In this document: in pieces, positions 4,231 to 57,801 of the stretch
Layout of the letters: each line of letters begins with the position of its first letter
Position numbering within the stretch: position 1 is the first letter of the stretch
Source: Thalia democratica
Lineage: Eukaryota
Direction: 5' to 3'
Assembly (NCBI GenBank): GCA_965202585.1
Contig: OZ241830.1
Location: 17,980,001 to 18,044,000, forward strand
DNA: 64,000 nt
Position numbers and translations under genes: made by a program
Notes under the pieces: generated by a model
Database searches by the model: none
What the model was told of the DNA's origin: nothing
Seen by the model: the letters and a program-made list of their open reading frames with translations, nothing else

Positions 4231-7200
4231 CAATACACTCAATTTAAAAAAACTATATAAAAAAATATTATAGATTAAAAAGTTGTACTTATTACAATAG
4301 TTTAAGAGTATAAGAAAGGGGTAAAAATTGGGAGTTTGATAACAAGAGGTTTATAACCTAAACTCAAAAGTGAAAGGTGATAAACTTTCATATCATTATC
4401 GATTAAATTTTCTTATTTTTAGGGTTTTCTTTTTCTACATATGTTTATTTATTTATTTTTATTTATAAGTTTATATCATTGCATTAATTTTTACCGATTA
4501 TTAATAATTTTTTATATCAATCATTATTGATATTATTATTTTATTACAGTTAAATATTTCTTAATTTAATTTTTTTATAGTTATATTATTATTTCCTTTA
4601 TCTATCTACATTATTAATTTTTCTGATATACATCGATTATATATATTTATTCTATTATTATTTTTATTGATGTTCATCTTTTTAATAATTTTATTAATTA
4701 TAATTTTTTTTTTATATTTTATTTCATCAATAAAAAAAATAACCGCTAGGTTTTGTGAGTCCGGTCCAGACTTGTCAATCTTGATTAATAAAACATACTT
4801 CTAAAATTTAAAAAGTTATTTCGTAAAGATTGACAAGTTTTAAAAAGTTCGTCGGTAGTTTGGCTTGATATATGCAAATTAGCAAAAGTTCGTCGAAAAA
4901 GTTCGTCAAAAAAGACGACTATAATTTTTTGTCAATCAAGTTATCGGTTTTACTTAAAAGAATGGCATCAGTGTAGTATAAACAGTTATTTCAACCAACA
5001 TATTTTAAACTTTCATTTTAAGCTTTGGTTTTTCAAGCTGGCTGCTTATTCTCAAAAAATGACAACCATGTATTAGGACCACCTTAAAAGTACATGTACT
5101 TAACCTTTTAATCTAAGTTAACTATGTTGTTGCAATGAGTTTATAAGTCATTAAAACTTATTAAAATGAAAACGTGTACTACTTTGCCAAATATTTATTT
5201 TTTAAGTTTGTATAGTAGTTAACCAAAACAGGTTTTTACCTTGTTTTCACATGTTTTACTTTTGTAATTTTTTTTTTCGGTTTTTGTTTCTAAAGTTTAC
5301 TTAAACCATGAGGCTTTTTTACTGTCTAGCCTTATTATATTAAGTAAACATTTTTGTTAAAAATAATTTTTTTTAAACAACTTTAAATTAAGTTAAATAA
5401 ATCTAAAATTATTAAATTTATTTACACTTCAGGCTAATTCAGGTTTAATTAATAGTTTGTTGCGAAACTTAAGTATTTTGGATATTTTTTAAACACCAGG
5501 TCTTATTTTATAATTTATTTTTTTTTTATTGATTTCCGACAAGATTTCTCTTGAAACTACCATTGAATACACCTAAGGCCCTTTTTTATGTTATTCGTCA
5601 TCAAATCCATGACATCTAGTGTAATATCTAATTATGGCCTTTTGGCTCTTCCTTTTACAGTTTGTGGCCCACTAGATTTACTAAAGTTTTCTCATATTAT
5701 TTAGTTTAAGTTTCAGAACTACTATTAAACCGCCTAAAACCTGTTTTTTTTTTGCTCTTCATCTTAGACACCAGAAACTATCTAGTGTAAATTTCAAATT
5801 ATGACCTCATGGCTATCCTGTGGCCCCTTTACAGCTCATACCCAACCCTAGATTATGATTTCCTCCCTTTGCTGCTTATGGCCGCCTAACTTTCTGTAAT
5901 GGCCCCCAAGAAAGGCACTTGGCCCACTTTAGAAAATCCTTATGTAAACTAATCAAGAAAATTCACTATCTCTAAAATTTCAACTTTCTATCAATAATGT
6001 TAAATGCTATCTAAAAGTTGTATAACTTCACTTGTTTATTTGTTGAAAGAAAAATGCAGTAAATTTCTTGTCTATTTTTAAATAAAGCATTTACTAGTCA
6101 GCTTTATCACATTAGTATATCACAGGGTTTTTACTATGTTATATAGTATAGTTCATTTATCAACAAAAAAAAACTCAAAATATTTTTTCTAAGACTCATG
6201 GTATAAACAAACTTTTCATTATGGGTTATTTTATATTTTATTTTTTTAAAGTTTTTATTCATTTAGTTCATTAAAAATAAAAGACTCCTGTCTCTGTTTT
6301 TAAGTTAGTTGGTACATCTTATTTATTTTAAAATAACAAAGTAAATTTGTTACTAGCTTTTAACAAAAAACTTTTAAAAATACTCCAGTTTTTAAACATT
6401 TATATATAATTTAATCAAACAAGTTTTACAAAAAAATTGTAATTAGCTGAAATCTAAACAAAAAACTTTAAACAAGTTAAAAGCTTTAAAACAAAATTTA
6501 AAAACATAGTTAACTTTATTAGTAGATTATAACTTATAAATAGAAAATTAAAACTTGAATTTTCAGTTTGGAAAATAAAATTTTCAAAATTTAAAAATAA
6601 AATTTGACTATGAAAAGTTTACTGGTTTTAGTATTGACAGCGATTAAATATATTCAAAATCAAAAACCATTTAAAACACTCTTGTTAAATGTCAATTTTA
6701 AGACAACATTGCAACTTTATTATACTAATGTCGCGGTCAAGTAGATTATTTGAAATAGTCAATTTTTTTTACTTCAGTTAAAATAACTTGATCAAACCTA
6801 AAAATAATATATGCTTAAATATAACCTAATTTTCAATTAGTATATATATTATAAATATATAGAATTGTTCCTAATTTAAACATTTTCTAACAATTATTTT
6901 TCATAATTGTTAACTAATAAATGCATAGTTAATTTAAAGTAAAACTGTTATACCAATGTTCTTTAAAAATTGTGCAGAATCTAAAATTTGTAATTAACAC
7001 AAACATTTTCAGATGAAATTTTTATGGGAATTAGTTAGTAGCTTCCTTATAAAATCAGGGTCTTAGAATATTGTTTTAAATTTATTATCACATTCAAAAA
7101 TATGTATTAAGACTAGTTCCACCTCTTTTTAATTAGCGTACAGCACAAAAGTGAAAGTTATTTATTCTTGCATTGAAAATCTAATCTTTGTTACTAAACA

Positions 7201-7384
7201 TAGTTGTTTACATTGTTAATTTTAATATTTAAAATTTAGTAACATAGAACAATCAAATCTGTGAAATAAGTTTTCTTTTGTTAAACAACTATATAATTAA
7301 ACAGCTAAGACTTTTTTTTTCTTTTTGAAAGCGTAGCAAAGATTATATTTGAGTTGTATAAACAAAGTAGGTGTCCAAAATGAG

Positions 7385-7750
7385 GGGTACTTTTGCATGA
7401 AGGGTCAAATATGCACAAAGACGCTATTGTACAAAGAAACTTTGCACGGTTGAAAATGTTTCAAGTTTTTTTTATTAAATCATTATTGTTTTTACTGTTA
7501 TTCCTAACCCTTAACCTAAGTCGGTAATGTGTTCTTATTATTTCATAACTTATTTTATATGATTCTTTTTATTTTTTAGTTGTTTTCTATTAAAATAATT
7601 TATAAGATTTTTTTTGTCACTGTTACCTCTAACCCTTACTTAAAGTCAGTAACTTTTTTTTTTCTTTTATGATTTTAATTAGTTTTTTTACTGTTTTAAT
7701 TTTTTTGTTCTCATTTAATTTTTTACCATTACTTTTACCTCTAACCTACT
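7385..7750. mobile_element. Degenerate non-autonomous element fragment with ACTTTTGCA(C) and CCTAACCC motifs
   Basis: Shares motifs with 18234-18323 and 45650-46070. Paralogous copy at ~49520-49890. No clear termini. Confidence 0.4.
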
Positions 7751-8117
7751 GTTGGGAACACAAAGCTTTTAGGGCACACGAAACTCACGAAATTTTTAGA
7801 TAAAACAAAAAAAAATTTTAGTCTTAATACTGTATTTATTTAATTAAAGCAGCTTAGTTTAATGTTAAAGTTGAATCTAGCCCTGGTCTTTAATTTAGCT
7901 TTTAGTTTATTGTCCATTTTACTCTCATGATCTATTTTAGTATTAAATTATGGACATCATTCTTTATATAAATAATGCATTGAAGTCACAACCCACAGCT
8001 GAAAAATGGAAATGTGCAAAGTCCATTGACTTATGTGGAAGAAGCTGTCATCCAGCTAATATCATGATTTACCACCAAATTAATAGGTTATTGTTTTCTG
8101 ATTTACTACGAATATTA

Positions 8118-8460
8118 CAGGGTTGCCAGTTTACCTGGAAAAACCTGGAATTTGACAATTTAGGCAGAAAAAAAAAGAAAAAACATTAATTACTAACAAT
8201 TTTGACATGTTCAGTAGTAGAATTTAATTTGAATTAAAAAAAATCATAAAATAAATTTTAAGAATTTGTCGTCATCAAATTTTTTATATTAAATAACAAA
8301 ATTATAAGTTTTACAGTATGTTTTTTATGCTTTTTAACACAGTTTCTTACCTTAAACATAACTTTAAACTAAAAACAGACTTGAAAAAGTCTACTTTTTT
8401 AAACCTGGGAGAAATTTGGATAACCTGTAGAAAAAAATTTTTAAACGAGTAGCAACCCTG
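8118..8460. mobile_element. MITE with CAGGGTTGC terminal inverted repeats (hAT-like termini)
   Basis: CAGGGTTGC at 8118 and GCAACCCTG ending at 8460. ATATTA on both flanks (possible TSD). Internal ACCTGG repeats; non-coding. Confidence 0.75.
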
Positions 8461-11400
8461 ATATTAGTAATTTATAGAATTTCGCTTAATGTAGAAAGTT
8501 ATGTTTTTTTCATCAAAATTATTATTATTACCTACTTTTTAAATTACAAAATTGTTCATATAAGGTTGTCCACTTGATAATGATGTTATTAGTCAAGTAA
8601 TAGTTAAAGTTTAGAACTATCTTCTATATTTACAGAAAAAAATAAGAACATTAATTTAATAAAAAAATACTTATATTGAGATAAAAACAATTAGAATATG
8701 GTAAAAATATTCTTCAAATAGATACATGGTAGTAGTGGTGAATAAATTTTAGTGACAATTTTAAGTTTTTAATAATTCAAAATTATACAATTATTATATT
8801 ATTATATATCAATAATTAGATAATGCATACAAACTCTATAACAATTATAGGGTTTAGTTAATACTTAGTTGCCACATACTGAGGCTAGTTTGAATTTTAT
8901 ATAGGTTTTTTGAAAAAATAAGGCTGGCTCATCATATTCTGGGGTTCTTTTGTAAATCTCAGGCTAATTAGCTATGATTTTAATAGATTTCTAGTTACTT
9001 TAATTTATTAGTTCTAAGATTTGAAAACTTAGTTCTTGAAAAATATCTTTATTTTTTACCTGTTTTGTTCTGTTGTTCTAACAAAAAAAAATTAACTAAT
9101 TATTTTCGTGTTTTAATTTGTCTTATAAGTTCTTTTTTCATTTATTTTTATTAATCAAGATGATTAGAGTAATTTGATGTAACTCAGGATAGATTTTTTT
9201 TACTCTAAACAAAGATTTTTACTCTAAAAAATTGCAAACCTTTTAATAACCAGTTTAAGTATCAGTATCATTTAGAGTTGTCAAACACTCAGCCTAGTTA
9301 AACTTTTCTTAAAAATACAGTCTTAATAGGCATTTTTTTCTTGCGAAAGGTAGTCTAGTTCTGGAATTTCTATTAATTTTCTGAATAGATTGTGTCAAAT
9401 TTTTTTTGAACAGTATGAATGTTTTTAGATTTTAATTTTTTAATCATAATGTTACTTCAAGTATACTGCTACATACTTTTTAGCTTTTGCTTTCTCTTTT
9501 CTATTTTAAACTTAAGTTGACTCAAACTAGTTTGTTGTAACTCTCACAGAGTGACACATACTTAGAATAATTCAGAATAGTATAAATTGCTTGCAGTTTC
9601 AAGGATAGTTTATAAAAAAAATTGAATCTTATTTCAATGTTTTTTCTTTCATGGAATGTAATTTCTTTGTTATAGTTTGAATTTTATGTTTTTTTCTTTA
9701 AAGTTCCTATTTTTCAGATATTTTAAATTTTTTATTTTAAAGTTCACTCATTTCAAATATTTATTTATGATTTTTTTATAAATAACTTAAAACATTTAAG
9801 GCTTATGATAGATTTTTGACTCAAAGAGTAACAACCCTACTTATACTTGTTACTCAGGCTGATTTTTTTTTTAGTTTTAACAAAAGCAAACTTAACAATT
9901 ATTATTGAACTGCTTACTCGAGGTCTAATTTTTTTATTTAGAAAATATATAAATGCAGTAATTTCAATAATTTAACTAAAAGATTTATAGTATGTGATTT
10001 AAAAGATGATGTAGCTTTATGTTTAACAAACACTTTTAAAAAGGCTGAAAAGTTTTTTTGTGTTTTGTCTATATATAATTTTACATACATTTAAAAGTTT
10101 AGTATTTGTGAAATATTACTTTTTTTTTCTGTTTTAGTTAGACTCAAGTAAAAAAACAGTTTAACATTTTACATTTTAAAAGGTACTTCTGGGATCTTTA
10201 GTTGTTTTACAATACTTAAGCTTTAAAAAAACTGTTAATTGATATCCCTTTCAGTGTTTTTATTATATAATTACAAAAATAAAGGTAGTTAAAAGTTATT
10301 TTGATATTCTTATCAAAACTTAAACAAATAAGGATTTTTAAAAATGTTTATGTTAGTTTATAATTTATTTTTTAAAGCTAAGGCTATATTTTAATATAAA
10401 TTAACAACTCTTTTTGTCTTAAAATAAATGTTTCAAATAATCTGTTTCTTATAACTATTATGTTCGAGGTTACTAACAAGATCGCCACAAATTCAGAATA
10501 TTCCGGGTTACTTTGTAACTTTTGAAAATCTCAGTATAACACATGATAACTCAAGAAATTTTAAATTTGTTTTCTAAACTCCGGCTGGCTCAGATAGTTT
10601 TTTTTATCTAAATACAGTTTTAAAATTTCAGGTAGTTTTTTCTACCTTTAAAGTGAGAAATAAGTGATTTAATTTCAATATTTTTTACTTTGTGGTAATT
10701 TTTGTTTAAGAGCTTGATTTATCTTGCCTTTGAAAAGTTTAAAATTAAAAAAAAAATCCTGGGTGACTGCAGTTCAGTTCAAAATCATTCAAGACAGTTT
10801 CTAAACATACAAATCAGTTTTGACTAAAAAGATTACAGCCCTGTCAAACTTTATTAACAACATTTACTTTCAATGTTTGACTTGTTAATCTAAAACAAGT
10901 TCTTTGGTGTTAGTATAACTAGGTTTAATTTTATTTCAAATTATTAATAGTCATTTTAACTGATCTAACTTCTTTTATTAAACTCAGCTAAAATCAAAAG
11001 TTAACACAATATCAAGTATTAAATGTTTACAGTAAAATATTTAATTTACTGTATAATACCAATCTTAATAGTCATAACAATTTTTGATATTTTTTGATAC
11101 TGATTAAATTAGATTATAAAGCAAATGACATTTAGCTGTTTAAAAAACAGAGTTTTCATACACTCAAACTACTCGGAATAACTTTATTGCTATTTTAAAA
11201 GTTTCGAGACTTAGGCACAGAATTTTTTTTTGAAAAACTTATGCTGACACATGTTTGATTGATTATTTTTTGAAAAATTCAGACTAGATTGATATTTTTC
11301 TGAATGTTAGACTATTTTACATATTTACTATGTTTTGATTAATTTATGTTAGATTCATTTAAGCTTTGTTAATTTGTTATTAAGCTTTTAGCAAAAATAA

Positions 11401-12742
11401 ATACATTTCTTCTTATTTAGACTAGCTTAAAGAATTACAAACTGGTTTTTGGTCAATTAAGATTGTTTTTATACTTGAAAGAGTGACAAACTCGAAACTA
11501 AATTGATAAGCCATGCTAAAATCTTAAAATACAGTACTTATTTGTAACTAACTTCATAAGAAAATATAGTTAAAATATAATTTTTTAGTTTTTTACCAGA
11601 AAAAAGTGACAATCAATTACAACCCTGATTTTTTCTTGAAATGCAGAAATTCAGTCTATGAAAGAAAAAACATCAGCATCAAATGTACAGAGATAAAGAT
11701 ATATACATTATTTTGAATATAGCTGTTTTTAATTCGTTTTTTTATGTTCATATTTTTCTATTTGTTTAATATCATTTGTAATAAGATAATACTCACAAAG
11801 TAAACGATAAAGAATTAGTTTAAGTATGTATTTAATATTATTAATTTTTTTTTAGAATACTGTACTTGGGTTTTAGTAGTGATTGCGGATATGTGCTCAA
11901 TTAATAAGTATGTAAGACAAAGCCATATAACTAAAATATCACTGTGAAAATAAGGTAAACCAAAAAAAAAGTTTCATTAAAACTAAGATGAAATATTAAA
12001 TTTCAGCTTGTGTTATCAAAAAGTTTTCATGTAAATATAAACTTAGTAATGATATATTAGCGCCGCTAGTGGGTTCCATGAAAACATATCTCATTAACAA
12101 AAAGCTTCAAAAACATCTTTTTAAAATGAAATATATTAATAAAAGTGTTTACGTAGTCCTACCGCTAGCGGCACTTTTTAAAATAGTATCTTGGGGACCC
12201 AATTTATGTTTTGCAGTTTGGTGTACACAGATTCTGATTAGCTTGAAGATCACTGGCTTAATATATATACCACTAGCTAAGTCTACTTTAAATATTTGTT
12301 CTGATTAAATTCTCATAGTAAAATAAGAAAAACAAAAATTATTAAAAACTTTTTTGCACAATAAAATACATTCTATGCATACTAGTCTTACAACCATCTT
12401 GCAGAGCATTTTACTATTAAACAGCAAGAGAAATAAGCAGATTCTAAAGTATTTTTAAAAAACTAGACATTTTTTTACGTTACTTCAAAGAAAAGTACAG
12501 CTTTAAGCTATGAATCAAACAAGACTAGACTTAAGGTTTTGACTTAAAATATGATAATGAGAGTTTTGTTATAAAATTTAACAAAATTAATTTGTTTTAT
12601 ATTTTTTTAAATAAAATAGTCAAAATTTTCATACGTTTCTTTCATTTTAGTATTATTATTACTTAAAAAGTAAACTTGAAAGTATTTAATAATCATTTTA
12701 AACAGGTTTTAAAAATTTGAAATATTAAAATTAAAAATAATA

Positions 12743-13328
12743 ATGGAGTACGAATGTTGTATATGCCTGGATAGGTTATTCAAAGTAGACTCAGAAGTAT
12801 CTGTCACACCGTGTGGTCATACCTTTCATAAAGACTGCATATCAAACGTAATAAAAGGTGAGAATAAGACATGTCCAATTTGTAGACAAGATTTACAGGA
12901 AGAAAAAGTAGTTAAAGTTCACTTTAATGTGAATAAAGAACTTGACTACAGTGATTGTTCAAATGATACTTTGATCTTCTTTGATAAAGTTGTTGAGTAT
13001 GAAGCAAACAAAAGGATGACTATGGTAAAAATCATTAAGAAATTAGATAAAGAAAATACCCGTCTAAAGGAAACTTACAAAACCAACTTTAAAGGCTACA
13101 GCTTGTGTAAGGTGTTATTGAGAGGTTTCCAGAAAGAAATTAAAAACTTGCATGAAAAAATCAGTAAGCTAAAATTAACAAATGGTGGGTTGATTGCTGA
13201 GATAAGAAGATTGTTTAATGAGAAAGAAGAAATTATTGAAGAGGAAAAGTCAGAGATTAAAGAAAATGAAATTGATGTAAATACTTGTGAAGAAGCTATC
13301 AACAATATTGAAGCAATAATTAGTAAAG
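12743..13328 (+). CDS. Unit A RING-CC-Kelch gene, coding exon 1: RING-H2 (C3H2C3, TRAIP-like spacing) plus coiled coil
   Basis: CCIC..CGHTFHKDC..CPIC motif, then a K/E-rich helical region. Phase-1 donor AAAG|GTTTGT at 13329. Copy C has a 1-nt indel just downstream of this donor, as expected for an intron. Confidence 0.9.
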
Positions 13329-14044
13329 GTTTGTTTATTTGCTATTGTTTAAATAACTTAATTGTTTACGTTAAACTTGTAGTTTTAAATAGAATCAGGA
13401 TCAAGACGGATCTTCAATTTATAATAAAGTCCAGATGAATAAGTTTGAAAGTATTCAAAATTTTAAGTTTATATAAAAAGATACTATCATTAAATTCAAT
13501 GCAAAACAACCACTGAAAATACATAAGCTCAAAAAAAAAAAAACTATAAAGGACTTAAAATCCACAGTTTTAAACACTTTTACTAATATAATTGACGATT
13601 TTGTTAACATTTTCTTATTGTTGGAAAACCTTTAACTAATTAAAAATTAAAAGTAAACTTATTCGTATAACCCTGTATGTAACATTAGTATATCTTTATT
13701 TATGTCTTATATATATTATTGTTACTGATTATTAAAATATGTTTTTACAGTAATTTAACTAGAATATTAGACTTTGAATACTCGTTCAACCGAAATTTAG
13801 CCTAAGTTACTTTAAATTATCTTAACTATTCTTAACCAAGTGCAATTTAATTAAACAACATCTGAAAACAGACGATTATCATTTTAAAAAATCAAACTCT
13901 ATTCTAATTAGCGTGTCCTGTAGATCAGTAGTTTTTATTTTAAAACTTTGAAAAAGAAATTATTTTCGAATTGTGTCAAGTAGAAATAATTCTCAATATA
14001 AAATTCTTAAATTTATTTTGTTATGGTATTTAGTTTTATTTTAG

Positions 14045-14530
14045 CTTTAAAATCGGAATTTTTTGAAGGGATTGATAATGAAAAAGTAAATGAAGTTTTT
14101 AGTGGAACTAAGAAAGCTTTAGATTACAGCATGAACATATGTTTAAATAAAAATTTACAGCATGAAGGGCTTCTAAATAAAGTAGAAAACAATATGAAAG
14201 AACTACAGGTAAACGATAAAAAAATAAGTGATTTTATATTGAGGAAATCTGTCGAACTAGAAATTGAAAACAAGGCATTGCAAGAAAACAACAAAGAAAT
14301 AATTAAATACCTTGAAATTTTGGAAAATTCGCTTAGACAGGCTCAGAACAAAACAGAATTCTTGAAAAAAGATTACGAAAGTTTAAAGTCAGAAAACAAC
14401 AATCTGTTGGCTGATTTAAAAACTACAAAACGGATAAAAACTAAAATTAAAATGTTAACAAGAAATGCAAGCGAAAAGCAAAATAATAACATTAATGATG
14501 TTCAGAGAACAAACTGCTATTCAACTAAAG
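14045..14530 (+). CDS. Unit A RING-CC-Kelch gene, coding exon 2: coiled coil
   Basis: Acceptor TTTTATTTTAG|CT at 14044 is phase 1 and joins exon 1 in frame (G+CT=Ala). Donor AAAG|GTATAT at 14531. Heptad-like L/E/K/N-rich sequence; 486 nt in all three copies. Confidence 0.8.
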
Positions 14531-14830
14531 GTATATTTATTTTTTTCTTTATTATTACTACAAGTTTTACAACTTTATATTACTTTACTTATATATTGTA
14601 TACGTAGTTCTTTTATTGCAATTTAAAGCTTTAATCATAAAACCAAAGCTCTCAGTAGACACAGGTTTCATTTTTATACAAAAATATTTTGCCTGAAATT
14701 TTACTAATATATAGTTTATTTTACGGCAAATCAAACCCTGCTTTGGTTACTATTACCTATTTTTTCTTTTTATTGTAATAACGTTATAAAGACTTGATTA
14801 ACTGTTGTAGACTTATTTTTTATTTTCTAG

Positions 14831-15735
14831 GTGCAGAAACCAATGAAATTAAAAGTTATATATACATTAGCGGAGGACAAAAAGATGAAAAAACTCACGA
14901 AAACTGTGTTTTAAAAATGGATACAAACATGGGTAAATGGGATCATTTTAAAACTATGGGTACACGTAGAAGTGAACATCAATCCTTACTAAAAGGAGAT
15001 CAATTGTATTTGATAGGCGGATATAATGGATCAGACTACGTTGATTCAGCTGAAAATGAGACCGTATATCTTAACGAGGAGTTAGCTACTAAAACGTTTC
15101 CTTTCATGCACAACAAACGGCTAAGCTTCGGAATGTGTTCTTTTGCAGAATGTGTTTTTGTCGGCGGAGGGTATCGAGAAGAAGGCGAAACCTTAGACAA
15201 TTGCGAAGTCTACAGTTTTGAAACTTGTGAATGGACTGAAGTTTTTAGTATGAACACTAAAAGAAGCGAATTTACTCTGACTTATTATCAAGGAAAAGTC
15301 TGGGCTATTGGCGGTTATTATCACTCAAATGACACAAATACATGGCTGAACACAATAGAAACATTCGATATTACAAAAAACAAATGGAAAACAAGCAATT
15401 TGAGGCTCCTAACTGAACGATCTGGACATAGCACTGTTGCTTACGATAAAAAACTCTTAATTGTAGGTGGCGAAAACAAAGATTCTTTTTTAGCTTCGGT
15501 TGAAGTTTATTCAAGCGAAACCAATCAGTTTAGCTTCGTTGCATCAATGAATATTCCACGATATAGTTTTGGATGCTGCGTTGTAAATTCAAGTTTGTAT
15601 GTGATGGGGGGATGGATTTTAGATTACGACACTCTAACAGATGAAGTTGCGATATACGACATTGAAAAAGATGAATGGAGAAGAGGTCCGAGTTTGCCTT
15701 TAAAATTGGCTGAATTTGCTTGCTCAAACACTTAA
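14831..15735 (+). CDS. Unit A RING-CC-Kelch gene, coding exon 3: six Kelch repeats (joined CDS 1977 nt, 658 aa)
   Basis: Acceptor TTATTTTCTAG|GT is phase 1. Six GG motifs (ISGG, LIGG, VGGG, AIGG, IVGG, VMGG) with the Kelch Y...W and R spacing. TAA at 15733-15735. Confidence 0.92.
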
Positions 15736-17239
15736 TGACCAGTTCTCATTTTACAACTCTCTAATTTTTTCTTGCTCTGAAACTTTATAATTTCTGCTTT
15801 TATTATAAGAATCTGCTAGTTATATGTTATCTAATAATATTTTTAGTTCCATGTTTTTAATAAAAAAGTTTAAATTTTTCTAGCTCTAAACAAAAGCTTG
15901 TACAGTTTTACCAAGTATAATATTTTTGTTAACTATATACAAACTTAAGTGATTGACTCACAATATTTTTCTTGTTTTCAATAAAGTTGTTAGTGTAAAA
16001 CTTTACTATTTTTGTTTTAATAGGCTTTATCTATACAAAAAACTTTGATCTTAAAAAAAAAATTATATTTAACAAAATATAAATTTTATACTTAAAATGA
16101 ACGCCATAAGTTTTATTTTATTACTATATCCTACTCATATTGTTTTAATTAACTATGTGTATTTTCCTTTACTTTCTTTTTTTTGTTTCGTTTGTTTTTT
16201 CTATATAAAATTAAAAAAAAAAAATTTAATTGTATTTAAGTATGTGTAAATAGTTCTAATAAAAACTAAACTAGGCATTAAATTTATTATAAGAAAAGTA
16301 ATTTTTTATAGTCCTTTAAACTTTAAGCTGAAAAAATGCCCATATTATTATAAAAATAGTATAAAGAAATAATTGCATATGAGTTTCCAGAGTGTTAAAA
16401 TAGATTAATAAAACATTTCTAAATTAAGTAATTTTAGTTATGTCTTAACTGCAATTGTTTTTATTACTCTTGGTGCTCAAAAATATAAGCTTGTGTAAAA
16501 CTCTAATGTATTGTTTAGTATAATTATATTAGTTAATTTAGTATAATTATCTTTTCTTTTAGTAGTAAACATTTTGTTGTTGATTTTAGTATATAGCTTG
16601 CTATTCAAGAATTTACTCTTTTATTTTAAAATAAATTATTTTCTATAGATAAAGTTTTCATTTTTTTGTTAATTTTAATATATAGCTTGAAAACTTGATT
16701 TATAGAAAACAAGTTATTATATAAGAAAACAGTAACTTCTTGAAAAGGAACGTAATGATTGGTATTAATAGTACAAATTGCGACAATGTTAAAACTATCC
16801 TGTATGCAAGGGTGGGCAACGATTTTAGTTGGCGAGCTAGGTGTGGAAAAATTAATTTGTGTATATTCTAAAGCGTTTAAGTTGCATTCAAGAAAAATAC
16901 TCAATTATTTAACGACAAATGATAATTTTAGGTGACCATTCTTTTTTATATATAATACAAACTTTAAATTTCTTACAAGTTTTATTTAAGCTTGTTCTTT
17001 ATCTTTATTTAATTTTCACAATATTAATAATAAGTTTCAAAATTTTGATTAGCAGGCAAGATGTACAAGCTTTCGGACCGCAGTTATATCTCTTTTAAGT
17101 TGGATACTGTTTAAATATTCTAGATGTTGTCCGTTTGGTGATTTTCGCTCTGCTTTTGTTTAGTTAAAGCAATCATCTTTGCAAACTTACACTAGAAATT
17201 TATCGTTAAATTGGATTTGTTTATACTGATACTCTTTTT

Positions 17240-18025
17240 ATTAAACAATAAAATTATACAATAAATCAAGAAGTTGGTGAAAATTACTTTAGAGAAAATA
17301 CTATATTTAAATTAAAGCTGCAAATAACTTAACTCGTAACGTAATGAATCGATTCATACAAAAAACTGCAAAAAAATCCAGTATGTTTGATAAGAACTTT
17401 CAAATTTAATTAACTAATGGTGGTTACTGTTTTGTCTGCATATTTTTAGCTATTATTAAAGTTCGATTTTACTTTTCTTTTTGATATTTATAAAGAAAAG
17501 GCAAGTGCAGTGGTTATTTATCACTCTCTTGTCTATACAGAGCAGGGTCAGCGACATTTTATGAGAAACAACCAAATTCACCTAAAAGGCTGTTTGCGAG
17601 CCACAGTTGTTTAATAAAATTTTAAATAAATAATAAATACAATATCGAATAGTAAATAAAATAAACATTAATTAGGCAGCAGTTTACTGACAAGGAAGTT
17701 TTTTTTATTATAAATTAGCACCAAATTCTTTATTTTATTTGAACTTTTTTAAAGTAAACGGCATGCCAATTGTTTCTGAGGGTCATATTTTATCAAACAA
17801 TTTATGTTTAAACTCAAAACAAATTATTCAAATACAATCAACAAACTTTAGTATGTTTACTGAAACTAAAAGACAAATACAAATATTTTGTAGAAATTTA
17901 TAAAAAAAAATTTTACTGTAAAAGTTCTAGATTTTAATTAGTTAATTGGTTTAAAGCTAAAAAAGCATTTAGTTTAAAATCATACTAAACTATTATCAAT
18001 ATAAATAAAAAGAATCTAAGTTAAA
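17240..18025 (+). repeat. First copy of a ~790-bp segment duplicated within unit A (second copy ~20325-21125)
   Basis: Shared blocks such as GGTGAAAATTACTTTAGAGAAA, CAAGTGCAGT(A/G)GTTATTTATCA and AAAAAGAATCTAAGTT occur twice in A but once in B; C carries only a partial copy. Confidence 0.85.
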
Positions 18026-18323: not shown

Positions 18324-21300
18324 ATCCAAACTATACTTTAATTATTTAGTTATGATTCTTTATGTTTATAATATATATATACAATAAAACAAGAAGTTTG
18401 AAAAAACTGTAACGCTGTTCTAAGTTTTACTTGAAAACCGTTTTGTTTTTAAGAGAAAATTAAGATTTATTAAGAGCACTTATAATTCTTGCCCGGGCAA
18501 AGTATGATGAAACAAAAAGTGAGAAAGAGAATAAAGAGAATGAGAGTGCATTTCTCTTTTAAGGCGTATTATCAAAACTGCATGATGCAACGATTCATTT
18601 AATGTTTTTTGTCACAAGCTGATAAGGTGATACGACAGATTGAACTGTGCTGACAGAATGCTGAAGAGAATGTTTACAAGATTGATACTTGAATATTGGT
18701 ATTGAGTTGTTTTATAAGTTTTAGTATATATATTTATAATTGTATTTCTTAGATTTAAATATTCTTACATAAAGAAAGTTTTGAAAATCTCTTATTGTAC
18801 ATTTTATAGCTCCTTTGATATCAATAAGTGATTTACTTAAAGCACTTTTTACAGTTTATAATATAAAGCACTTTTCACATGAGTGACATACTTATATAGT
18901 TCTTGAAGCTTTTAACACTTTGTTTTGCATTTAATTTTGAGAATTTCTTAAAATATTATTGAGCTTTTTATAGTGGTTAATATACAGTATTTCATTATAC
19001 AAATTATATATTTAATATTTCTTGTAGTTTTAACAATTGATTTTGTATTCATTGAAGTTCGTTTAATAGAGAAACCCACTTAATTTTTGTGCCTGGCTAT
19101 TTATAGTAGTATATATTGATATCTAGTTATACTTAGTCTAGGGTAAAGTGATAACTATGTCAAATCCCATTAATAAAGTAACACTAAGATTAAGCCTTAA
19201 ACTTAAATGTTCTAGGGTAAATTAATCTTTTGATGTTGAGTCACCAACACCCACTAGTTTCAATACAACTGATTTAAATAAGTTTTCTATATTAAAGATG
19301 TGATTCTAGCTACAGAGTTCACTGCAGACACTTTATTTCGTTATGTTATAAGTTATTATAACATAATAAAAAGACTAGGGCCTGTGTTAAGTATGTCATT
19401 TCTATTATATACCATACTTGCCATGGAACTACTAATCACTTTATTCGTGTTTTTTTCATAATTCTTTTCTAAAACAAAGTCAATATATATGAAAAATCTA
19501 TTAAATCTATCGTTAAAAAGTTAAAGCTGTTTTTTATCTTACCATTTCTAGGTCAGGCGCTCTTGACGTTAAGAAACAATATTTACAACTGCTGGATTTA
19601 GGTCGTACTCACCTTTATGTTAAAATATTTTCTAAATTTTATGCCAAAATTTTCTGATTCTACATATAAAATTGGTATTTTTATTACAATATTATATTAA
19701 AAGTATTAAAGGTTCTTAAGTAGTTCAAATTAAAAACTTTTGTTTGAGTTAGCAAAAATTTCTATTGCTAAACTATAATGTAAAAGATAAGCGTAGAAAA
19801 GTAAAATAATTGTGCATATATATGTTCATATTTAATAAATAATTAGCGTTTATTATAAATTTGATCAATAAAGGATAAAAGTTATTCATATTTCCAGTTC
19901 AAAGGTCGGAAATAAACAGGTCCCAAAGTGCTAAACTTCAAGTATTAAAACTAACGCCGGCTGCAATTTTAGTTTTTTATCATTGTAAGTTTATTGTCAT
20001 ACGAAGGACCCAGGCATCAAAACCTAGGCCACTTATCCAGAAAGATATACAACAAAAAGACAAAAATAAACCAAAATTGTACATTAAAAATTAAAAAAAA
20101 AACTGAGTTTAACTAATTAAAGTTTAAAATTAACATAATATGACAAAAACTATAACATAAATTTTATAATTCCGGTGCTTCCGAAAAGAGAACAACAATA
20201 TCCTACTTCAACTTCACCCGAACAAATGGTTTCACTCCAAAACTGGTTTCACTTTCATTCGAACAACTGGCTTCACATTTTTTGAACAACTGGTTCAGCC
20301 TTCATTTGAGTAATTGGTTTAATTCAACAATAAAAGTGTACAATAAAATCAAGTAATTGGTGAAAATTACTTTAGAGAAATTAAGTTATTTAAATTAAAG
20401 CTGCAATTAATTTAATTCGTAACGTTAATCTATTCAAATAATAAACTGGCAAAAAGATCCAGTATGTTTTATAAGAATTTTCCAATTGGATTGACCAATG
20501 GTGGTTACTGTTTTGTCTTCATATTTTTAGCTGTTTTTAAAATTTAATTTTAGTTTTCTATTTGATGTTTACAAAAAAAAAAGACAAGTGCAGTAGTTAT
20601 TTATCAATCTTCTATCCTTAGAGAGCAGGGTCAATGAGATTTTATGAGGAACAACCAAATTCACTACAAAAGGCTATTTGCGGGCCACAGATGTTTTGGA
20701 AAGTTTTAATTATTAAATAACTAATAAACACAACAACGAATAATTCATTAAATTAATATTAATTAGGCAGCTGTTTACTGACAAGAAGGTTTTTTTTTTC
20801 ATTATAAATTAGCACCAATTTATTTATTTTTTCATTTTAATTTTTTTACGTAAACAGCATGGCAATTGTTTTTGAGAATCATAATTTACCAAACAATTTA
20901 TTTTTAAACTCAAAACAAATTATCCAAATTTTATCAACAAACTTGAGTATATTTATTTAAATTAAATAACAAATACAAGATTTGTAGAAATTTATAAAAC
21001 TTTTTTTGCTTTAAAAGTTCTAGATTTTAATTAGTTACACGATTTGTTTAAAGCTAAACAATATTTAGTTTAAAATCATACCAAACTATTATCAATATAA
21101 ATAAAAAGAATCTAAGTTGAACACTGATTTTAGCTTATGTGCAGACATAGTTTATGTTTAAGCAATAAAAAAATCAAAAGAGGCCAATAAAAACCAGTTT
21201 ATTTTCCAATAATGCTATAACTAGTCGGCCGTTTTTATTTCGTTTGTTATCCTTAATAGTTTACTTTTATAAACTTTATAAAAAGCTAATTCTAGGTTAA

Positions 21301-21689
21301 CTTTACAAACTAACGGACCTCACGAATCTTTCTTGTCCATTCATATGTGTGGTGATCTGAAGAAAAAATTATCTCCCTGTCTGTTTAAACCTTTACGAAA
21401 TTTACTTAATAAGCTGATAAAATCTTGAAACGAAAATTTTTCATTACATTATTTTCACTAATGTCATTACAAATTTTAGATTTATATAATTACCCGTTCA
21501 AAGCAAATAAGTGATCTTACACGAGGTTCCAAGGGGAGAAATCTAGAGTTTGCTTCACCTCCTGGTTTCTCCAAATTTTTTTTTTTCAAACATTGTCATC
21601 AGACAGTCTTTTGAAATAAAGACAGTCTACAGAGCCGAAGCTTGGACTTTTGTACGCCGTGAGACTAGCTCAAGTTCTCAAAAAGTTTT

Positions 21690-21765
21690 ATCATACCAAT
21701 TCCATCATCAGACATAGGTCTCAGTCTACCAAAGGCTTGTGGTCTGATGATCGAATTGAAATGAT
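21690..21765 (+). ncRNA. Candidate pre-miRNA-like hairpin (copy A)
   Basis: ~30-bp stem with an 11-nt loop. The inner stem needs G-U pairs that form only on the + strand. The 3' arm is invariant in three copies. Confidence 0.5.
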
Positions 21766-21924
21766 CAATCTTTTTGTGACTTTTATTTTTGTGTTAAATT
21801 TATATCTGTACAATTTTCTTAACTGACTAAAAGTAATAGCTGTTATGGTTTTATCTTCAATATCAAACTTTTTATAAGTTAAAGGGAGTTTTTCACGTCA
21901 AATAGTAATTTTGGTACAAAAAAA

Positions 21925-22115
21925 ATGTCTAAAAATTCATTCAGCTCAACGATTAATAACACTCATGGCGTGGAAGTAGAAACTAAGCTGCTTCTTTCTG
22001 CTAATAATTTCAATTAAGTTCACTCACAAGTCAAGAAAAGACGCAATAGAAAGGGAAATTCCTCACCAGGTTTACCTGAAGCGCCACACGGACTGACTCT
22101 TTGTGAAACGAGTTA
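21925..22115 (+). pseudogene. 5' fragment of a trypsin-family protease gene (signal region to EIPHQVYLK); overlapped by a 30-codon sORF in another frame
   Basis: KLSCFFLLII...KDAIEREIPHQVYLK resembles a signal peptide followed by the PYQVSL region. In-frame TAG (vs TAC in fuller copies) is shared by all three units. Confidence 0.75.
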
Positions 22116-22615
22116 AAAAACAAAATTTTTGCGTACTTTGTCAATACTAATCATTTCGTACTTTGTCAATATTAGAAAATATATTTTTAAATGTGCAAAT
22201 GTTTCTGCTTAGCTATTATTTAGCTTCGTTATATGGTTTGGTTGTTAGAATTGTATTATTATAAACTTTTGTTTAGATTTTTTGATACTTAGTCCTCAGC
22301 AAATAAAAATTAGCAATCTAAACAAAAGTACATACAAATAAAATTCTAACAACTAAACCGTATTACGAGTCACTACTTGAGAAATTTTACTATACTTGTC
22401 TTATGTCTTACATTGGTGTTATTTAAACAACAATGTGTTTTTGATTTATGTGTGTAAATAGAAAAATGTACAATTTCTATAAAAACTTGCCTTAAAAGTG
22501 ATAGCTGTTATGTTTTTATTTTTAATCTCACAATTTTTATAAGTTAATAACAAACCCTTTGTTACGTCAAATAATAATTTTGGTATAAAAAAATGCTATA
22601 AGTTTAATTAGCATC

Positions 22616-24090
22616 ATGATAAACAACAGTTGGAAGTACAAACTAGTCTGCTTCTTTCTTTTGACATATTTTCAACTTATGTTCTCTCGAAGTCGGGAAA
22701 GGACGCACGAGAAAAGGAAACTTCCTACCAGGAACGCCACACGGGCAGAAGTCTGTGAAAACCGAGTTCAAACACGAATATTTGGCTTAGCTGACAATTA
22801 CGCGCTGGTACTGAGCGCCGTCTACTGCTTGGGAAATAAAAACATTTTCGTGGACGTGTACAAGATCACATAGGGAAGCATACATGCCTACAAACAAAAC
22901 AACGACACTCGCAGAATGTTTGATTACTTTAGGGGTATTATGAAGGTTACAGGGACAGGAAACAAATTAGGTGGAGGACCTCGACAGGGAAGTAGCGTGA
23001 TTGGAACTAATCGGCCGTTTTGAACCACTTTGAAAGTGATAATCGGTTGGAACTACAGGAATTCGTGTTGAGATGGTGAACGGAAGAGCGCAGCAAGTGA
23101 AGCCGAATGTTTTGCAGGGGAAGAAAATATTTTGGTCGATGGTTACCTCTGTGCAAAACTCGTTCAACGACGACAATTACAAAAATAGTTTCTGCCGACA
23201 CAAACTCCAGTTTCGAATTCCAGAGCTCCTGCAAAGGCGACTCGGGCGGTCCAGTGGCTTGCAAGCAGTCGAAAAGTGTCCACTTCGATAATTTGGTGAA
23301 CAGTGTCATGCGGAGGTTTTAAATTTCAAACGGCTGGTAGCATTGGACAGCCGTGCGTGGCAGCTAAGCTTTTGGCCCACGTAGAGCAGATTGATGAAAA
23401 CGTGAGAACAGTTTCTCTAAACTTGATTATTAAGCAAAAAGAATTGGACGCTGGAGAGGTTTATCACGCTCAATATTTCAGCAACAAAAAATGTTATATT
23501 ATAGCTTGCTAAGGTGCCATCCTCAGCAAAAGATGGGTTTTAACTGCAGCGAGTTACTTTAACAACTTTCCTTTGCAGCACACAGAAGGACTGTTCAGTT
23601 TATAAGAAGACCCGAAATAGATCTTGAAAGTGCCGGTTGCAACATAGGGTAGCTTGCAGGTGAAAGATGCAAATAATTCGTGCCAACACGGAGACTATCA
23701 AAATGACAAGTATGATAAGCACAACATTGTAGTGATATTTCTCCTCGGTGAAGTTGATTACTAAGTTGAGTTTGATAAACAATTTAGAATGATTACTGGT
23801 TGCAATGTGAAAGACTGCAAAGTTTTTAGATGGGAAGATAATTGTAAAACTAAAAATGCAGAAGACAAAAATTCTCTGCAAGTAAGCAAAGTAGGTATTT
23901 TAGATGAAAAAAAGTTGCAGCTCTCTCATGTTAAACCCAAGTGTTATGCAGTTGCTTTATGATCATCATGATTTTACTGAACAAGAATTTTTAATACCTA
24001 CCATCAGTGTTGAAGCAGGAACTAGTTTAACTTACAAAGATTATATACATGTTACCATGTAGTTAACGAAGTCGCATCTTTCAGAGGATA
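22616..24090 (+). pseudogene. Intronless two-domain trypsin-family serine protease pseudogene (unit A, + copy)
   Basis: Signal-like N-terminus; LSAVYC region; SCKGDSGGPVAC; second domain GAILSKRWVLTAASYF, HGDYQND, LQVSKVGIL. Multiple stops and frameshifts. Confidence 0.85.
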
Positions 24091-24094
24091 CCTC

Positions 24095-25551: not shown

Positions 25552-26239
25552 TTTTTTATATCAAAATTACTATTTGACGTAACAAAAAAAAGTTTAAAAT
25601 CTATAAAAATTGTGTGATAAAATATAAAAACATAACAGCTATCTTTTTTATGGCAAGTTTTTATAAAAATTGTACACAATATAACTTACACACATAAACC
25701 AAAGAAAATGAAAAAGTGGTTTAAAATTGAGCATCAATGTACATGGATGTGCAAGTAATTTACTTAAAGTGCACAGAAAACTTCAAAAACAATAAAAATT
25801 TGTCAAAAAAAAACCTTATTTTTTATTGTTTTAAATGTTTTTGTGTATATTTAAGCTTAACATATATTTATTAAGTATCTATAAAGGAAACTTAGATATA
25901 AACTAAATGTTAAACAAAATACCTAATCCGTAAAAAATCACATTTTAGTTAGTTATTGTGCATTACTTTTGTACACAATGGAAAACATATTCATTTAGTC
26001 TTTTTGTTAAATAGGTTTTGTAAAAATAACCAAGTCCAATCATTTTTAACATTCTTTTTAAGATCAAAAGTTACTGTTTTAACCAAAAAAATTATTATAG
26101 AAATGAAAAAAAAAGCTTTGTTCTAATGCTAATCTGTCAAGTCTTCTAATCGTTTGAAAATTTTTTACAGGGACTTGAAACAAAATTAATCAAATAAACT
26201 TACTTACCGAAAAAAATTAACCTAAAATATATTTTTGAT

Positions 26240-33492: not shown

Positions 33493-34078
33493 ATGGAGTA
33501 CGAATGTTGTATATGCCTGGATAGGTTATTCAAAGTAGACACAAAAGTATCTGTCACATCGTGTGGTCATACCTTTCACAAAGACTGCATATCAAACGTA
33601 ATAAAAGGTGAGATTAAGAAATGTCCAATTTGTAGAGAAGAATTACAGGAAGAAACGATAGTTAAAGTTCACTTTAATGTGAATAAAGAACTTGACTACA
33701 GTGATTGTTCAAATGATACTTTGAGTTTCTTTGATAAAGTTGTTGAGTATGAAGCAAACAAAAGGATGACCATGGTAAAAATTATTAAGAAGTTAGATAA
33801 AGAAAATACCCGTCTAAAGGAAACTTACAAAACCAACAGAAAAGGCTACAGCTTGTGTAAGGTGTTATTGAGAGGTTTCCAGAAAGAAATTAAAAACTTG
33901 CATGAAAAAATCAGTAAGCTAAAATTAACAAAGGGTGAGTTGATTGCTGATATAAGAAGATTGTTTAATGAAAAAGAAGAAATTATTGAAGAGGAAAAGC
34001 CAGATGTTAAGGAAAATGAAATTGATGTGAATATTTGTGAAGATGCTATCAACAATATTGAAGCAGTAATTAGTAAAG
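33493..34078 (+). CDS. Unit B RING-H2 plus coiled-coil exon 1 (open; downstream exons damaged)
   Basis: Intact RING-H2 motif. Same 586-nt length and AAAG|GTTTGT donor as copy A. Confidence 0.8.
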
Positions 34079-34777: not shown

Positions 34778-35263
34778 CTTTAAAATCGGAATTTTTTGAA
34801 GTGATTGGCATTGAAAAAGTAAATAAAGTTTTTAGTGGAAATAAGAAATCTTTAGATTACAACATGAACATAATTTTAAATGAGAATTTACTGCATGAAG
34901 GGCTTTTTAATAAAGTTGAAAACAATATGAAAGAAATACACGTAAACGATGAAAAAATAAGTGATTTAATATTGATGAAGTCTCTCGAACTAGAAGTTGA
35001 AAACAAGGCATTGCAAGAAAACAACTTAGAAATAACTAAATACCTTGAAATTTTGGAAAATTCGCTAAGACAGGCTCAGAACAATGCAGAGTGCTTGAAA
35101 AAAGATTACGAAAATTTGAAGTCCGAAAATAACGATCTATTGGCTGATTTAAAAACTACAAAACGGATAAAAACTAAAATTAAAAGGTTGACAAGAAATG
35201 CAAGCAAAAAGGAAAATGATAACATTAATGATGTTCAGATAACAAACTGCTATTCAACTAAAG
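34778..35263 (+). pseudogene. Unit B coiled-coil exon 2 with a destroyed splice acceptor
   Basis: Open 486-nt homolog of A exon 2, but the acceptor AG reads AT (34776-34777). The nearby AGs at 34771 and 34741 give phase 2, out of frame with exon 1. Confidence 0.65.
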
Positions 35264-35565
35264 GTACATTTATTTTTTTTAATTTTAATATTACTTTACG
35301 TTTTACAACTTTATATTACTTTACTTATATATTGTATACGTAGTATTTTTATTACAATTTAAAGCTTTAATCAAAAAATGAAAGCTCTCAGTAGACGCAG
35401 ATTTCGTTTTCATTACAAAAATATTTTGTCTGATTTTTTACTAATTTATAGTTTATTTTACGGCAAATAAAACCCGTTTTGATTACTATTACCGGTGTTT
35501 TCTTTTTATTATAATGATATTAGAAAAACTTGATTAACTGTTGTAGACTTATTTTTATTTTCTAG

Positions 35566-36473
35566 GTGCAGAAAACAATTAAGTTAAAAGTTATATATAT
35601 ATTAGCGGAGGAAAATCAGATAAAACAACTCAGGAAAACTGTGTTTTGAAAATGGACACAAACATTGGTAAATGGAATCATTTTAAAACTATGGGTACAC
35701 GTAGATGTTGCCATCAATCCGTAATAAAAGGAGATCAATTGTATTTGATAGGCGGATATAATGCATCAGACTATGTTGAATCAGCTGAAAATGAGATTGT
35801 GTCTCTCAGCGATAAATTAGCTACAAAAAAGTTTCCCTTTATGCACAACAAACGGCTAAGCTTTGGAATGTGTTCTTTAGCAGAATGTGTTTTTGTCGGA
35901 GGAGGATCTAAAAACTCTTCTGAAGTTATAGACAAATGCGAAGTCTACAGTTTTGAAACTTTTGAATGGACTGAAGTTTCTAGTATGAACACTAAAAGAT
36001 ACGACCTTACTTTGACTTATTTTCAAGGAAAAGTCTGGGCTATTGGCGGTTATAACCACTCAAATGACACAGATACATGGCTGGACACAATAGAAACATT
36101 CGATATTACAAAAAACAAATGGAAAACAATCAATTTGAGGCTCCTAACTAAACGATCTGGACATAGCACTGTTGCTTACGACAAAAAACTTTTTGTTGTT
36201 GGTGGCCGTACAAAAGAGCGTATTTTGACGTCGGTTGAAGTTTATTCGAGCGAAACAAATCAGTTTAGCTTCGTTGCTTCAATGAATAATCCACGCGATA
36301 CATTCGGATGCTGCGTTGTAAATTCAAGTTTGTATGTGATGGGGGGATGTAGATTAGATGTCGACGATCTTACAGATGAAGTTGCGATATACGACATTGA
36401 AAGAGATGAATGGAGAAATGGTCCGAGTTTGCCTATGAAACTGGCTTATTTTGCTTGCTCTGAAAGTTCATAA
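35566..36473 (+). pseudogene. Unit B Kelch exon 3 with a premature stop (GAA>TAA at 35580-35582); rest of the six-blade propeller open
   Basis: Acceptor TTTTCTAG|GT is conserved. The fifth codon is TAA where A and C have GAA. The frame is open from there to 36473. Confidence 0.8.
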
Positions 36474-54809: not shown

Positions 54810-55395
54810 ATGGAGTACGAATGTTGTATATGCCTGGATAGGTTATTCAAAGTAGACTCAGAAGTATCTGTCACACCGTGTGGTCATACCTTTCACAAAG
54901 ACTGCATATCAAACGTAATAAAAGGTGAGAATAAGACATGTCCAATTTGTAGACAAGATTTACAGGAAGAAAAAGTAGTTAAAGTTCACTTTAATGTGAA
55001 TAAAAAACTTGATTACAGTGATTGTTCAAATGATACTTTGAGCTTCTTTGATAAAGTTGTTGAGTATGAAGCAGAAAAAAGGATGACCATGGTAAAAATC
55101 ATCAAGAAGTTAGATAAAGAAAATACCCGTCTAAAGGAAACTTACAAAACCAACTGTAAAGGTTACAGCTTGTGTAAGGTGTTATTGAGAGGTTTCCAGA
55201 AAGAAATTAAAAACTTGCATGAAAAAATCAGTAAGCTAAAATTAACAAATGGTGGGTTGATTGCTCAGATAAGAAGATTGTTTAATGAAAAAGAAGAAAT
55301 AATTGAAGAGGAAAAGTCAGAGATTAAAGAAAATGAAATTGATGTAAATACTTGTGATTATGCTATCAACAATATTGAAGCAATAATTAGTAGAG
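54810..55395 (+). CDS. Unit C RING-CC-Kelch gene, coding exon 1 (RING-H2 plus coiled coil)
   Basis: Intact RING-H2; 586 nt; donor AGAG|GTTTGT at 55396. Confidence 0.9.
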
Positions 55396-56110: not shown

Positions 56111-56596
56111 CTTTAAAATCGGAATTTTTTGAAGGGATTGACATTGAAAAAGTAAAAGAAGTTTTTAGTGGAACTAAGAAAGCTTTAGATTACAGCATGA
56201 ACATATGTTTAAACAAAAATTTACTGCATGAAGGGCTTCTAAACAAAGTTGAAAACAATATGAAAGAACTACAGGTAAACGATAAAAAAATATGTGATTT
56301 AATATTGAGGAAATCTGTCGAACTAGAAATTGAAAACAAGGCATTGCAAGAAAACAACAAAGAAATAATTAAATACCTTGAAATTTTGGAAAATTCGCTC
56401 AGACAGGCTCAGAACAAAACAGAATTCTTGAAAAAAGATTACGAAAGTTTAAAGTCAGAAAACAACAATCTGTTGGCTGATTTAAAAACTACAAAACGGA
56501 TAAAAACTAAAATTAAAATGTTATCAAGAAATGCAAGCGAAAAGCAAAATAATAACATTAATGATGTTCAGAGAACAAACTGCTATTCAACTAAAG
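56111..56596 (+). CDS. Unit C RING-CC-Kelch gene, coding exon 2 (coiled coil)
   Basis: Phase-1 acceptor TTTTATTTTAG|CT at 56110; donor AAAG|GTACAT at 56597; 486 nt. Confidence 0.8.
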
Positions 56597-56896: not shown

Positions 56897-57801
56897 GTGC
56901 AGAAACCAATGAAATTAAAAGTTATATATACATTAGCGGAGGACAAAAAGATGAAAAAACTCACGAAAACTGTGTTTTAAAAATGGATACAAACATGGGT
57001 AAATGGGATCATTTTAAAACTATGGGTACACGTAGAAGTGAACATCAATCCTTACTAAAAGGAGATCAATTGTATTTGATAGGCGGATATAATGGATCAG
57101 ACTACGTTGATTCAGCTGAAAATGAGACCGTATCTCTTAACGAGGAGTTAGCTACCAAAATGTTTCCTTTCATGCACAACAAACGGCTAAGCTTTGGAAT
57201 GTGTTCTTTTGCAGAATGTGTTTTTGTCGGCGGAGGGTATCGAGAAGAAGGCAAAACCTTAGACAATTGCGAAGTCTACAGTTTTGAAACTTGTGAATGG
57301 ACTGAAGTTTTTAGTATGAACACTAAAAGAAGCGAATTTACTCTGACTTATTTTCAAGGAAAAGTCTGGGCTATTGGCGGTTTTAACATCTCAAATCACA
57401 CAAATACATGGCTGGACACAATAGAAACATTCAATATTACAAAAAACAAATGGAAAACAAGCAATTTGAGGCTCCTAACTGAACGATCTGGACATAGCAC
57501 TGTTGCTTACGATAAAAAACTCTTAATTGTAGGTGGCGAAAACAAAGATTCTTTTTTAGCTTCGGTTGAAGTTTATTCAAGCGAAACCAATCAGTTTAGC
57601 TTCGTTGCATCAATGAATATTCCACGATATAGTTTTGGATGCTGCGTTGTAAATTCAAGTTTGTATGTGATGGGGGGATGTATTTTAGATTACGACACTC
57701 TAACAGATGAAGTTGCGATATACGACATTGAAAAAGATGAATGGAGAAGAGGTCCGAGTTTGCCTTTAAAATTGGCTGAATTTGCTTGCTCAAACACTTA
57801 A
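56897..57801 (+). CDS. Unit C RING-CC-Kelch gene, coding exon 3 (six Kelch repeats)
   Basis: Phase-1 acceptor; six GG motifs; open to TAA at 57801. Confidence 0.92.

Follow-up and report, generated by a model that had tools for sequence, protein, structure and literature searches.

Gene copies and gene model

We analyzed a 64,000-nucleotide (nt) stretch of a Thalia democratica assembly (GenBank GCA_965202585.1, contig OZ241830.1, positions 17,980,001 to 18,044,000 of the forward strand), hereafter called the window, in which positions are counted from the first letter. The window is AT-rich eukaryotic DNA (~25% GC). Comparing it with itself revealed three copies, about 21 kb apart, of a gene in which a RING-H2 finger, a helical region, and a Kelch beta-propeller follow one another on the plus strand. 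We refer to them as copies A (12743 to 15735), B (33493 to 36473), and C (54810 to 57801). Relative to A, DNA identity is 97.8% for C and 85% for B. Copy A consists of three long open reading frames (ORFs) that can be joined as three exons, and domains and open frames were checked exon by exon. The features of the three copies are as follows.

12743..13328, plus strand: copy A exon 1, 586 nt; start codon, RING-H2 (~12752-12886), post-RING strand motif, first helical/coiled-coil module
13329..14044, plus strand: copy A intron 1, GT..AG; 3' end uncertain
14045..14530, plus strand: copy A exon 2, 486 nt, symmetric (phase 1-1), second helical module
14531..14830, plus strand: copy A intron 2, GTATAT..TTCTAG
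14831..15735, plus strand: copy A exon 3, 905 nt including the TAA stop; complete six-blade Kelch propeller
33493..34078, plus strand: copy B exon 1, RING-H2 plus helix, open
34778..35263, plus strand: copy B exon-2 homologue, open; TAT at the place of the A/C acceptor, next in-frame AG giving a start at 34802
35566..36473, plus strand: copy B exon-3 homologue, Kelch; premature TAA at 35580-35582
54810..55395, plus strand: copy C exon 1, RING-H2 plus helix, intact
56111..56596, plus strand: copy C exon 2, intact; TTTTAG acceptor as in A
56897..57801, plus strand: copy C exon 3, Kelch, intact

The copy A exons sum to 1977 nt, or 659 codons with the stop, which gives a product of 658 amino acids. 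The donors are G|GTTTGT (intron 1) and G|GTATAT (intron 2), and the acceptors are TTTTAG|CT and TTCTAG|GT; the two introns, both of phase 1, interrupt the codons GCT and GGT. In copies A and C, every in-frame exon piece is free of stops. An earlier note on this DNA had proposed three phase-1 exons joining in frame to 658 amino acids in A and C, and the exon sums, splice sites, and open frames agree with that model. The phase-1 donor after exon 1 is conserved among the family copies, and the intron-2 acceptor CTAG|GT is kept in every copy compared.

The acceptor of intron 1 is less uniform. The AG at 14043-44 is found only in A and C among six independent copies compared, the others being B and the marine-metagenome copies L001, L004, and L006. 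The junction 13328/14045 of the earlier model thus stands for A and C, in which site 14044 is clearly the best intron-1 acceptor, but not family-wide, as the other four copies read TAT there. All six copies retain a phase-1 AG, in frame, at the place that corresponds to 14067-68 (exon 2 starting at 14069), and in B, L004, and L006 the first AG past the T-rich tract is in frame. A further in-frame, phase-1 site, CTTTAG at 14122 (exon 2 starting at 14123), is invariant; it is a possible acceptor but less likely than 14044 or 14068 because it has no pyrimidine tract and is remote from the T-rich one. The ATTTAG at 14032-33 was rejected since it leads out of frame or into a stop in every copy. Depending on the acceptor, the product has 658, 650, or 632 residues, and the architecture is unchanged.

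The RING, helical, and Kelch regions form one chain

Relatives in marine metagenomes present the same domains in several exon layouts. On the Tara Oceans contigs L001, L003, and L004, ORFs for the RING, the helical region, and Kelch succeed one another as in our gene, all on one strand, with Kelch regions 48 to 65% identical to ours, and contig L002 has the same layout, its RING ORF being truncated where the contig begins. When exon 1 was used as the query of an exhaustive HMMER search, two sequences (P0073 and P0066) emerged in which the RING and both helical modules occupy one uninterrupted ORF. On contig L009, such a RING-two-module ORF ends at a phase-1 donor, G|GTTTGT, which is followed by an intron of ~140 nt and then by the start of the Kelch exon. 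Finally, P0134 (507 amino acids; positions 2714-4237 of the Tara contig L005), also recovered with exon 1, has its RING, helix, and Kelch encoded by a single ORF without interruption, as does its sister P0216, which is 68% identical to it. In the AlphaFold2 model of P0134, a RING (residues 1-61) is followed by one helix of 80 residues (90-169), and a disordered linker leads to a propeller (185-507).

Because the same chain recurs in three exon layouts, a two-gene reading is ruled out for practical purposes. As read from these sequences, the RING, the helices, and the Kelch domain are one polypeptide, and the fusion of a TRAIP-like N terminus to a Kelch domain that the earlier note had deduced from copy A is borne out by the uninterrupted ORF of P0134 and by the succession of RING, both modules, and Kelch exon on L009.

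RING finger and TRAIP-like N terminus

The RING-H2 occupies residues 4-48 of exon 1 (Pfam zf-RING_2, E value 1.9e-12, above the curated cutoff). Its ligands follow a C3H2C3 pattern, C5-x2-C8-x15-C24-x-H26-x2-H29-x2-C32-x11-C44-x2-C47. Across 15 family members, some with as little as 28% identity, Met1 and the eight zinc ligands hardly vary or do not vary at all. The sole exception at a ligand is the exon-1 ORF P0071, which has Phe at the seventh ligand (C44); some metagenomic copies are therefore probably inactive, to judge from this residue. Residues of the type that contacts the ubiquitin-conjugating enzyme (E2) can be read in the sequence: Ile7 between the first two Cys, Pro45 before the last Cys pair, and Arg48 after the last Cys. 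The residue at this last position differs within the family (R, K, N, or T).

A profile of the RING-plus-helix family had its best matches of solved structure in the active RING-H2 ligases RNF4, Arkadia, and RNF165, and it aligned with COP1 over 156 positions of RING and coiled coil (E value 7e-7). The only named proteins matching exon 1 over both the RING and the helix were TRAIP or TRAIP-like proteins from insects and from one spider, in keeping with the TRAIP-like RING-H2 and coiled coil that had been proposed for the N terminus. The match covers residues 2-174 with a phmmer E value of ~1e-7 against 1.8 billion proteins (29% identity over 184 columns) and reached 2e-16 by BLASTP in one pairwise comparison.

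Helical modules

Exon 2 has no Pfam family above threshold, with weak matches to coiled-coil families, and it contains zero proline and a modest heptad signal. Together, the two tandem helical modules span ~300 residues without proline. Aligned as profiles, the exon-1 and exon-2 modules match each other with an hhalign probability of 96.9% (E value 1.9e-10), and by this comparison exon 2 is a diverged duplicate of the exon-1 helical module. Duplication of a module fits both the symmetry of exon 2 (phase 1-1) and the single module of P0134. A BLASTP alignment had exon-2 residues 12-26 as a copy of the post-RING motif, but this register was not reproduced in the profile comparison, and we did not use it for placing the acceptor.

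Kelch propeller

Exon 3 encodes six Kelch repeats (Pfam Kelch_1, 1.1e-49), and its best natural match of solved structure is KLHL3 (E value 4.6e-38). The exon boundary coincides with the domain boundary, at the start of the propeller, and the last C-terminal strand closes blade 1. AlphaFold modeling, which the earlier note had put forward as a check, yielded a closed six-blade KLHL-type propeller for exon 3 (predicted local distance difference test, 92.2; predicted template modeling score, 0.90), alongside the RING, helix, and propeller of P0134. Foldseek aligned the exon 3 model with the Kelch domains of KLHL3, KLHL12, and KEAP1 at template modeling scores of 0.85 to 0.89 and a probability of 1.00.

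The ratio of nonsynonymous to synonymous substitution rates (dN/dS, or omega) in pairwise comparisons was 0.43 to 0.63 in each of the three exons, at dS of 0.23 to 0.46. Judged by these ratios, constraint on the gene is weak but real, and its similarity across exons is as expected for one gene. Within the propeller, residue entropy peaks right after every GG (the B-C loops) and just past the conserved Arg of each blade. We compared omega among parts of the propeller, including a set of positions, GG+1 to GG+7, that was chosen beforehand.

B-C loops: dN/dS 0.93
D-A loops: dN/dS 0.35
Strands: dN/dS 0.31
GG+1..+7 (set chosen beforehand): dN/dS 0.93, dN 0.48
Rest of propeller: dN/dS 0.39, dN 0.12

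The omega of the GG+1..+7 set was reached by 1.75% of random block sets. Between A and C, the Kelch exon differs at 11 residues, with 6 of the differences in post-GG loops and 4 at residues 162-167; omega for this pair is 1.0 in exon 3 (12 nonsynonymous and 3 synonymous changes) and 0.27 in exons 1-2. Taken as a whole, the pattern shows that the presumed binding face changes fast among copies.

Copy B and the tandem units

In copy B, codon 5 of exon 3 is an in-frame TAA (35580-35582), and the acceptor ahead of it is strong and intact. Because of this premature stop, copy B is probably a pseudogene, with the TAA as its single lesion. In both B (35577-35583) and the metagenomic copy L006 (~1375-1380), an in-frame TAA followed by G forms AAG, a potential in-frame phase-1 acceptor. 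In L006 this is the first AG past the pyrimidine tract, so the stop there may be spliced out.

The gene is embedded in a higher-order tandem unit of ~21 kb that occurs three times in the window, as the earlier note's proposal of tandem amplification would have it. The unit is represented by the following segments.

5535-17523, 30959-37258, and 47683-59588: tandem unit segments
21056-24094, 41345-43636, and 60314-63384: further segments of the unit

The units of A and C have 12 kb in common at 93% identity and that of B only 6.3 kb at 84%. The greater likeness of A and C suggests a later two-unit duplication or gene conversion.

Family size and distribution

With the Kelch exon we found 43 relatives, 42 to 78% identical, all of them unnamed marine-metagenome ORFs and several from Tara Oceans. 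Short contigs at least 90% identical over the 3.3 kb numbered 1129, 1074, and 654 in three runs under two organism labels, which indicates that the genome holds very many close copies. These three runs are DNA, because introns are covered as well as exons.

Among the matches of the exon, P0134, and family-profile searches, there was no annotated protein with both RING and Kelch, and only P0134 and P0216 carried both. Literature searches found no paper describing a RING-Kelch protein. The family looks lineage-restricted, as had been suspected from copy A, and on these searches is so far known only from a marine animal.

Carriage by a mobile element was rejected, as there are no terminal inverted repeats and no boundary is common to all copies. 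From ~30 nt past the stop, five Tara copies share a 3' flank (L001 from 6186 on, L004 from 5808 on, L006, L007, and L008). Copy A does not have this flank (window 15765 onward), and the lineage of A, B, and C has thus acquired a different downstream sequence.

Comparison with known ligases

Ligases that combine a RING, a coiled coil, and a propeller are already known, namely, COP1 (with WD40) and the TRIM-NHL proteins. The architecture that the earlier note had called unusual therefore belongs to a less exotic class than it supposed; what does stand is that a Kelch domain joined to a RING was not found in the named proteins and papers searched. In our comparison the gene follows the known RING-coiled-coil-propeller layout, with Kelch as an apparently new choice of propeller.

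The resemblance to TRAIP (NOPO) lies in a RING-H2 that starts at residue 4-5 and is followed by a long helical region, and in the post-RING strand motif (VVKVHFN versus VIKVYFN). Identity is only ~29%, however, and the C-terminal half of TRAIP, the tail of which binds PCNA, is replaced here by the second helical module and the Kelch propeller. The NGLGGH block of TRAIP, which is present in P0122, P0188, and P0212, is absent from the exon translations. By these sequence criteria the family member is not a TRAIP orthologue.

COP1 (RFWD2) likewise has a RING, a coiled coil, and a C-terminal substrate-binding beta-propeller in a single chain. Its propeller is a seven-blade WD40 that binds VP motifs, whereas ours is a six-blade Kelch; it has an N-terminal extension before the RING, and there is none here; and COP1 is a single conserved gene, in contrast to the multicopy, fast-changing family described here. 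TRIM-NHL and TRIM-SPRY proteins also have a RING, a coiled coil, and a C-terminal recognition domain in one chain, and the finTRIMs of fish and TRIM5 are known for tandem family expansion with the binding loops most variable. Our gene differs from TRIM proteins in its H2-type RING, in having Kelch as the recognition domain, and in the B-box. No B-box was among the best 25 of 31 Pfam matches, the post-RING cysteines of exon 1 are three isolated residues, and exon 1 lacks a further zinc module beyond residue 50.

The Kelch domain is of the same type as that of KLHL proteins and KEAP1 in both sequence and fold, including closure by a C-terminal strand. Those proteins have BTB-BACK, whereas here a RING is in the same chain. 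Neither BTB (PF00651) nor BACK (PF07707) gave a Pfam match in any exon of A, B, or C, which agrees with the earlier description of a Kelch protein without BTB-BACK and leaves the protein no known way to bind CUL3.

Proposed function and alternative explanations

We consider it probable that A and C, both intact, and B, recently disabled, belong to a large, fast-evolving family of a marine animal in which each gene encodes a self-contained RING ubiquitin ligase. Given the full set of zinc ligands and the Ile, Pro, and Arg described above, the RING would recruit E2~ubiquitin directly. The helices, as in COP1, TRIM, and TRAIP proteins, would form a coiled coil that dimerizes the protein and spaces its two ends, and exon 2, with its symmetric phases (1-1), probably originated as a duplicate of the exon-1 helical module. 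By analogy, the propeller would bind substrate through the face made of the B-C and D-A loops, the part that varies among copies. Kelch propellers are normally tied to ubiquitination via a BTB domain and cullin-3. With the propeller on the same chain as the RING, no cullin would be needed for binding a target and recruiting an E2, and the protein is predicted to work without one. The family as a whole could then be a ligase repertoire, with one constant catalytic end and many target-binding ends.

Several observations weigh against this reading. Four of the six copies compared have TAT in place of the modeled intron-1 acceptor, and the eight codons that follow it contain a 1-nt deletion in L001 and a TAA in L006. 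No run recorded as RNA contains the gene stretch, and no listed joint equals the predicted splice junctions. An overall omega of ~0.5 and the omega of 1.0 for exon 3 of A and C are also expected under relaxed constraint. We do not claim positive selection in the loops because omega there is ~0.9 to 1.0 and never above 1, because dS is raised there too, and because gene conversion may have contributed. Ligase activity, dimerization, and cullin independence are deduced from homology.

Alternatively, the copies could be evolutionary debris, that is, an amplified family that is mostly decaying and silent, with A and C intact only through recent duplication. The broken copy B, the lack of an RNA run containing the stretch, and the omega values just given are in line with such decay, as is the similar DNA identity of exons (77-79%) and introns in comparisons with distant copies. 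Yet six independent copies keep ~650 codons open at a dS of 0.3-0.45 in a genome with very frequent chance stops, omega is 0.31-0.35 in the strands and D-A loops, Met1 and the zinc ligands do not vary among members with 28-40% identity, and the splice donors and the intron-2 acceptor are conserved. We therefore regard decay as an unlikely account of the family. It is less likely still that the gene encodes one protein that is not a substrate-targeting ligase, with a RING that is dead or serves assembly only and a Kelch domain acting as a binding decoy or scaffold. In many RINGs, activation of E2~ubiquitin is helped by the residue that follows the last Cys, and the variation of this residue within the family (R, K, N, T) would suit such a protein; the ligand set, the E2-contact Ile, and the Pro before the last Cys pair are nonetheless retained, and the nearest solved RINGs by profile are the active ligases named above. 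The least probable of the alternatives, to which we give very little credence, is that RING-helix belongs to one gene and helix-Kelch (or only Kelch) to another, or that the two are cistrons trans-spliced independently of each other. Every exon by itself makes a long ORF, and an ATG at 14131, called conserved in the earlier note, is common to A, B, and C; it is conserved inside the window, but outside it the codon is TTA in L001, TTG in L004, and TCA in L006. The single ORFs of P0134 and P0216 and the joining of the RING and both modules in one exon of L009 also speak against separate genes, and both junctions are phase-1 compatible in every copy. Moreover, codons 1 to 28 of exon 3 include no ATG, so that a product made from this exon alone would miss the first strand of blade 1.

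Within the preferred reading of a family of self-contained ligases, a more specific role can be imagined, although we hold it to be rather doubtful: the family may comprise germline-encoded, massively diversified ligases with hundreds of Kelch faces, acting as intracellular recognition receptors for viruses, mobile elements, or non-self in a planktonic tunicate. If so, it would represent an as yet undescribed ligase architecture and a Kelch-based counterpart of TRIM5 and the finTRIMs. Amplification to very many copies, with the greatest differences on a presumed binding face, is otherwise seen in immune-type TRIM families, and the family may thus mark a recognition system private to its lineage. 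Its members also make up a natural collection of predicted ligases that are compact and modular and have many binding specificities.

Other features of the window

A satellite occupies positions 1-4230, with 22 copies of a 190-bp unit at 90% matches, and its array extends past the window start. The GC-richer part of each ~21-kb unit contains inverted segments that are 73 to 77% identical to one another, in the following pairs.

22440-23295 versus 25703-24828: inverted segment pair
24826-25707 versus 62580-61699: inverted segment pair
24828-25698 versus 43585-42726: inverted segment pair

Two direct repeats of 617 bp (37774-38390 and 39753-40369), 97.9% identical and ~1.4 kb apart, are possibly the ends of a small inserted element.

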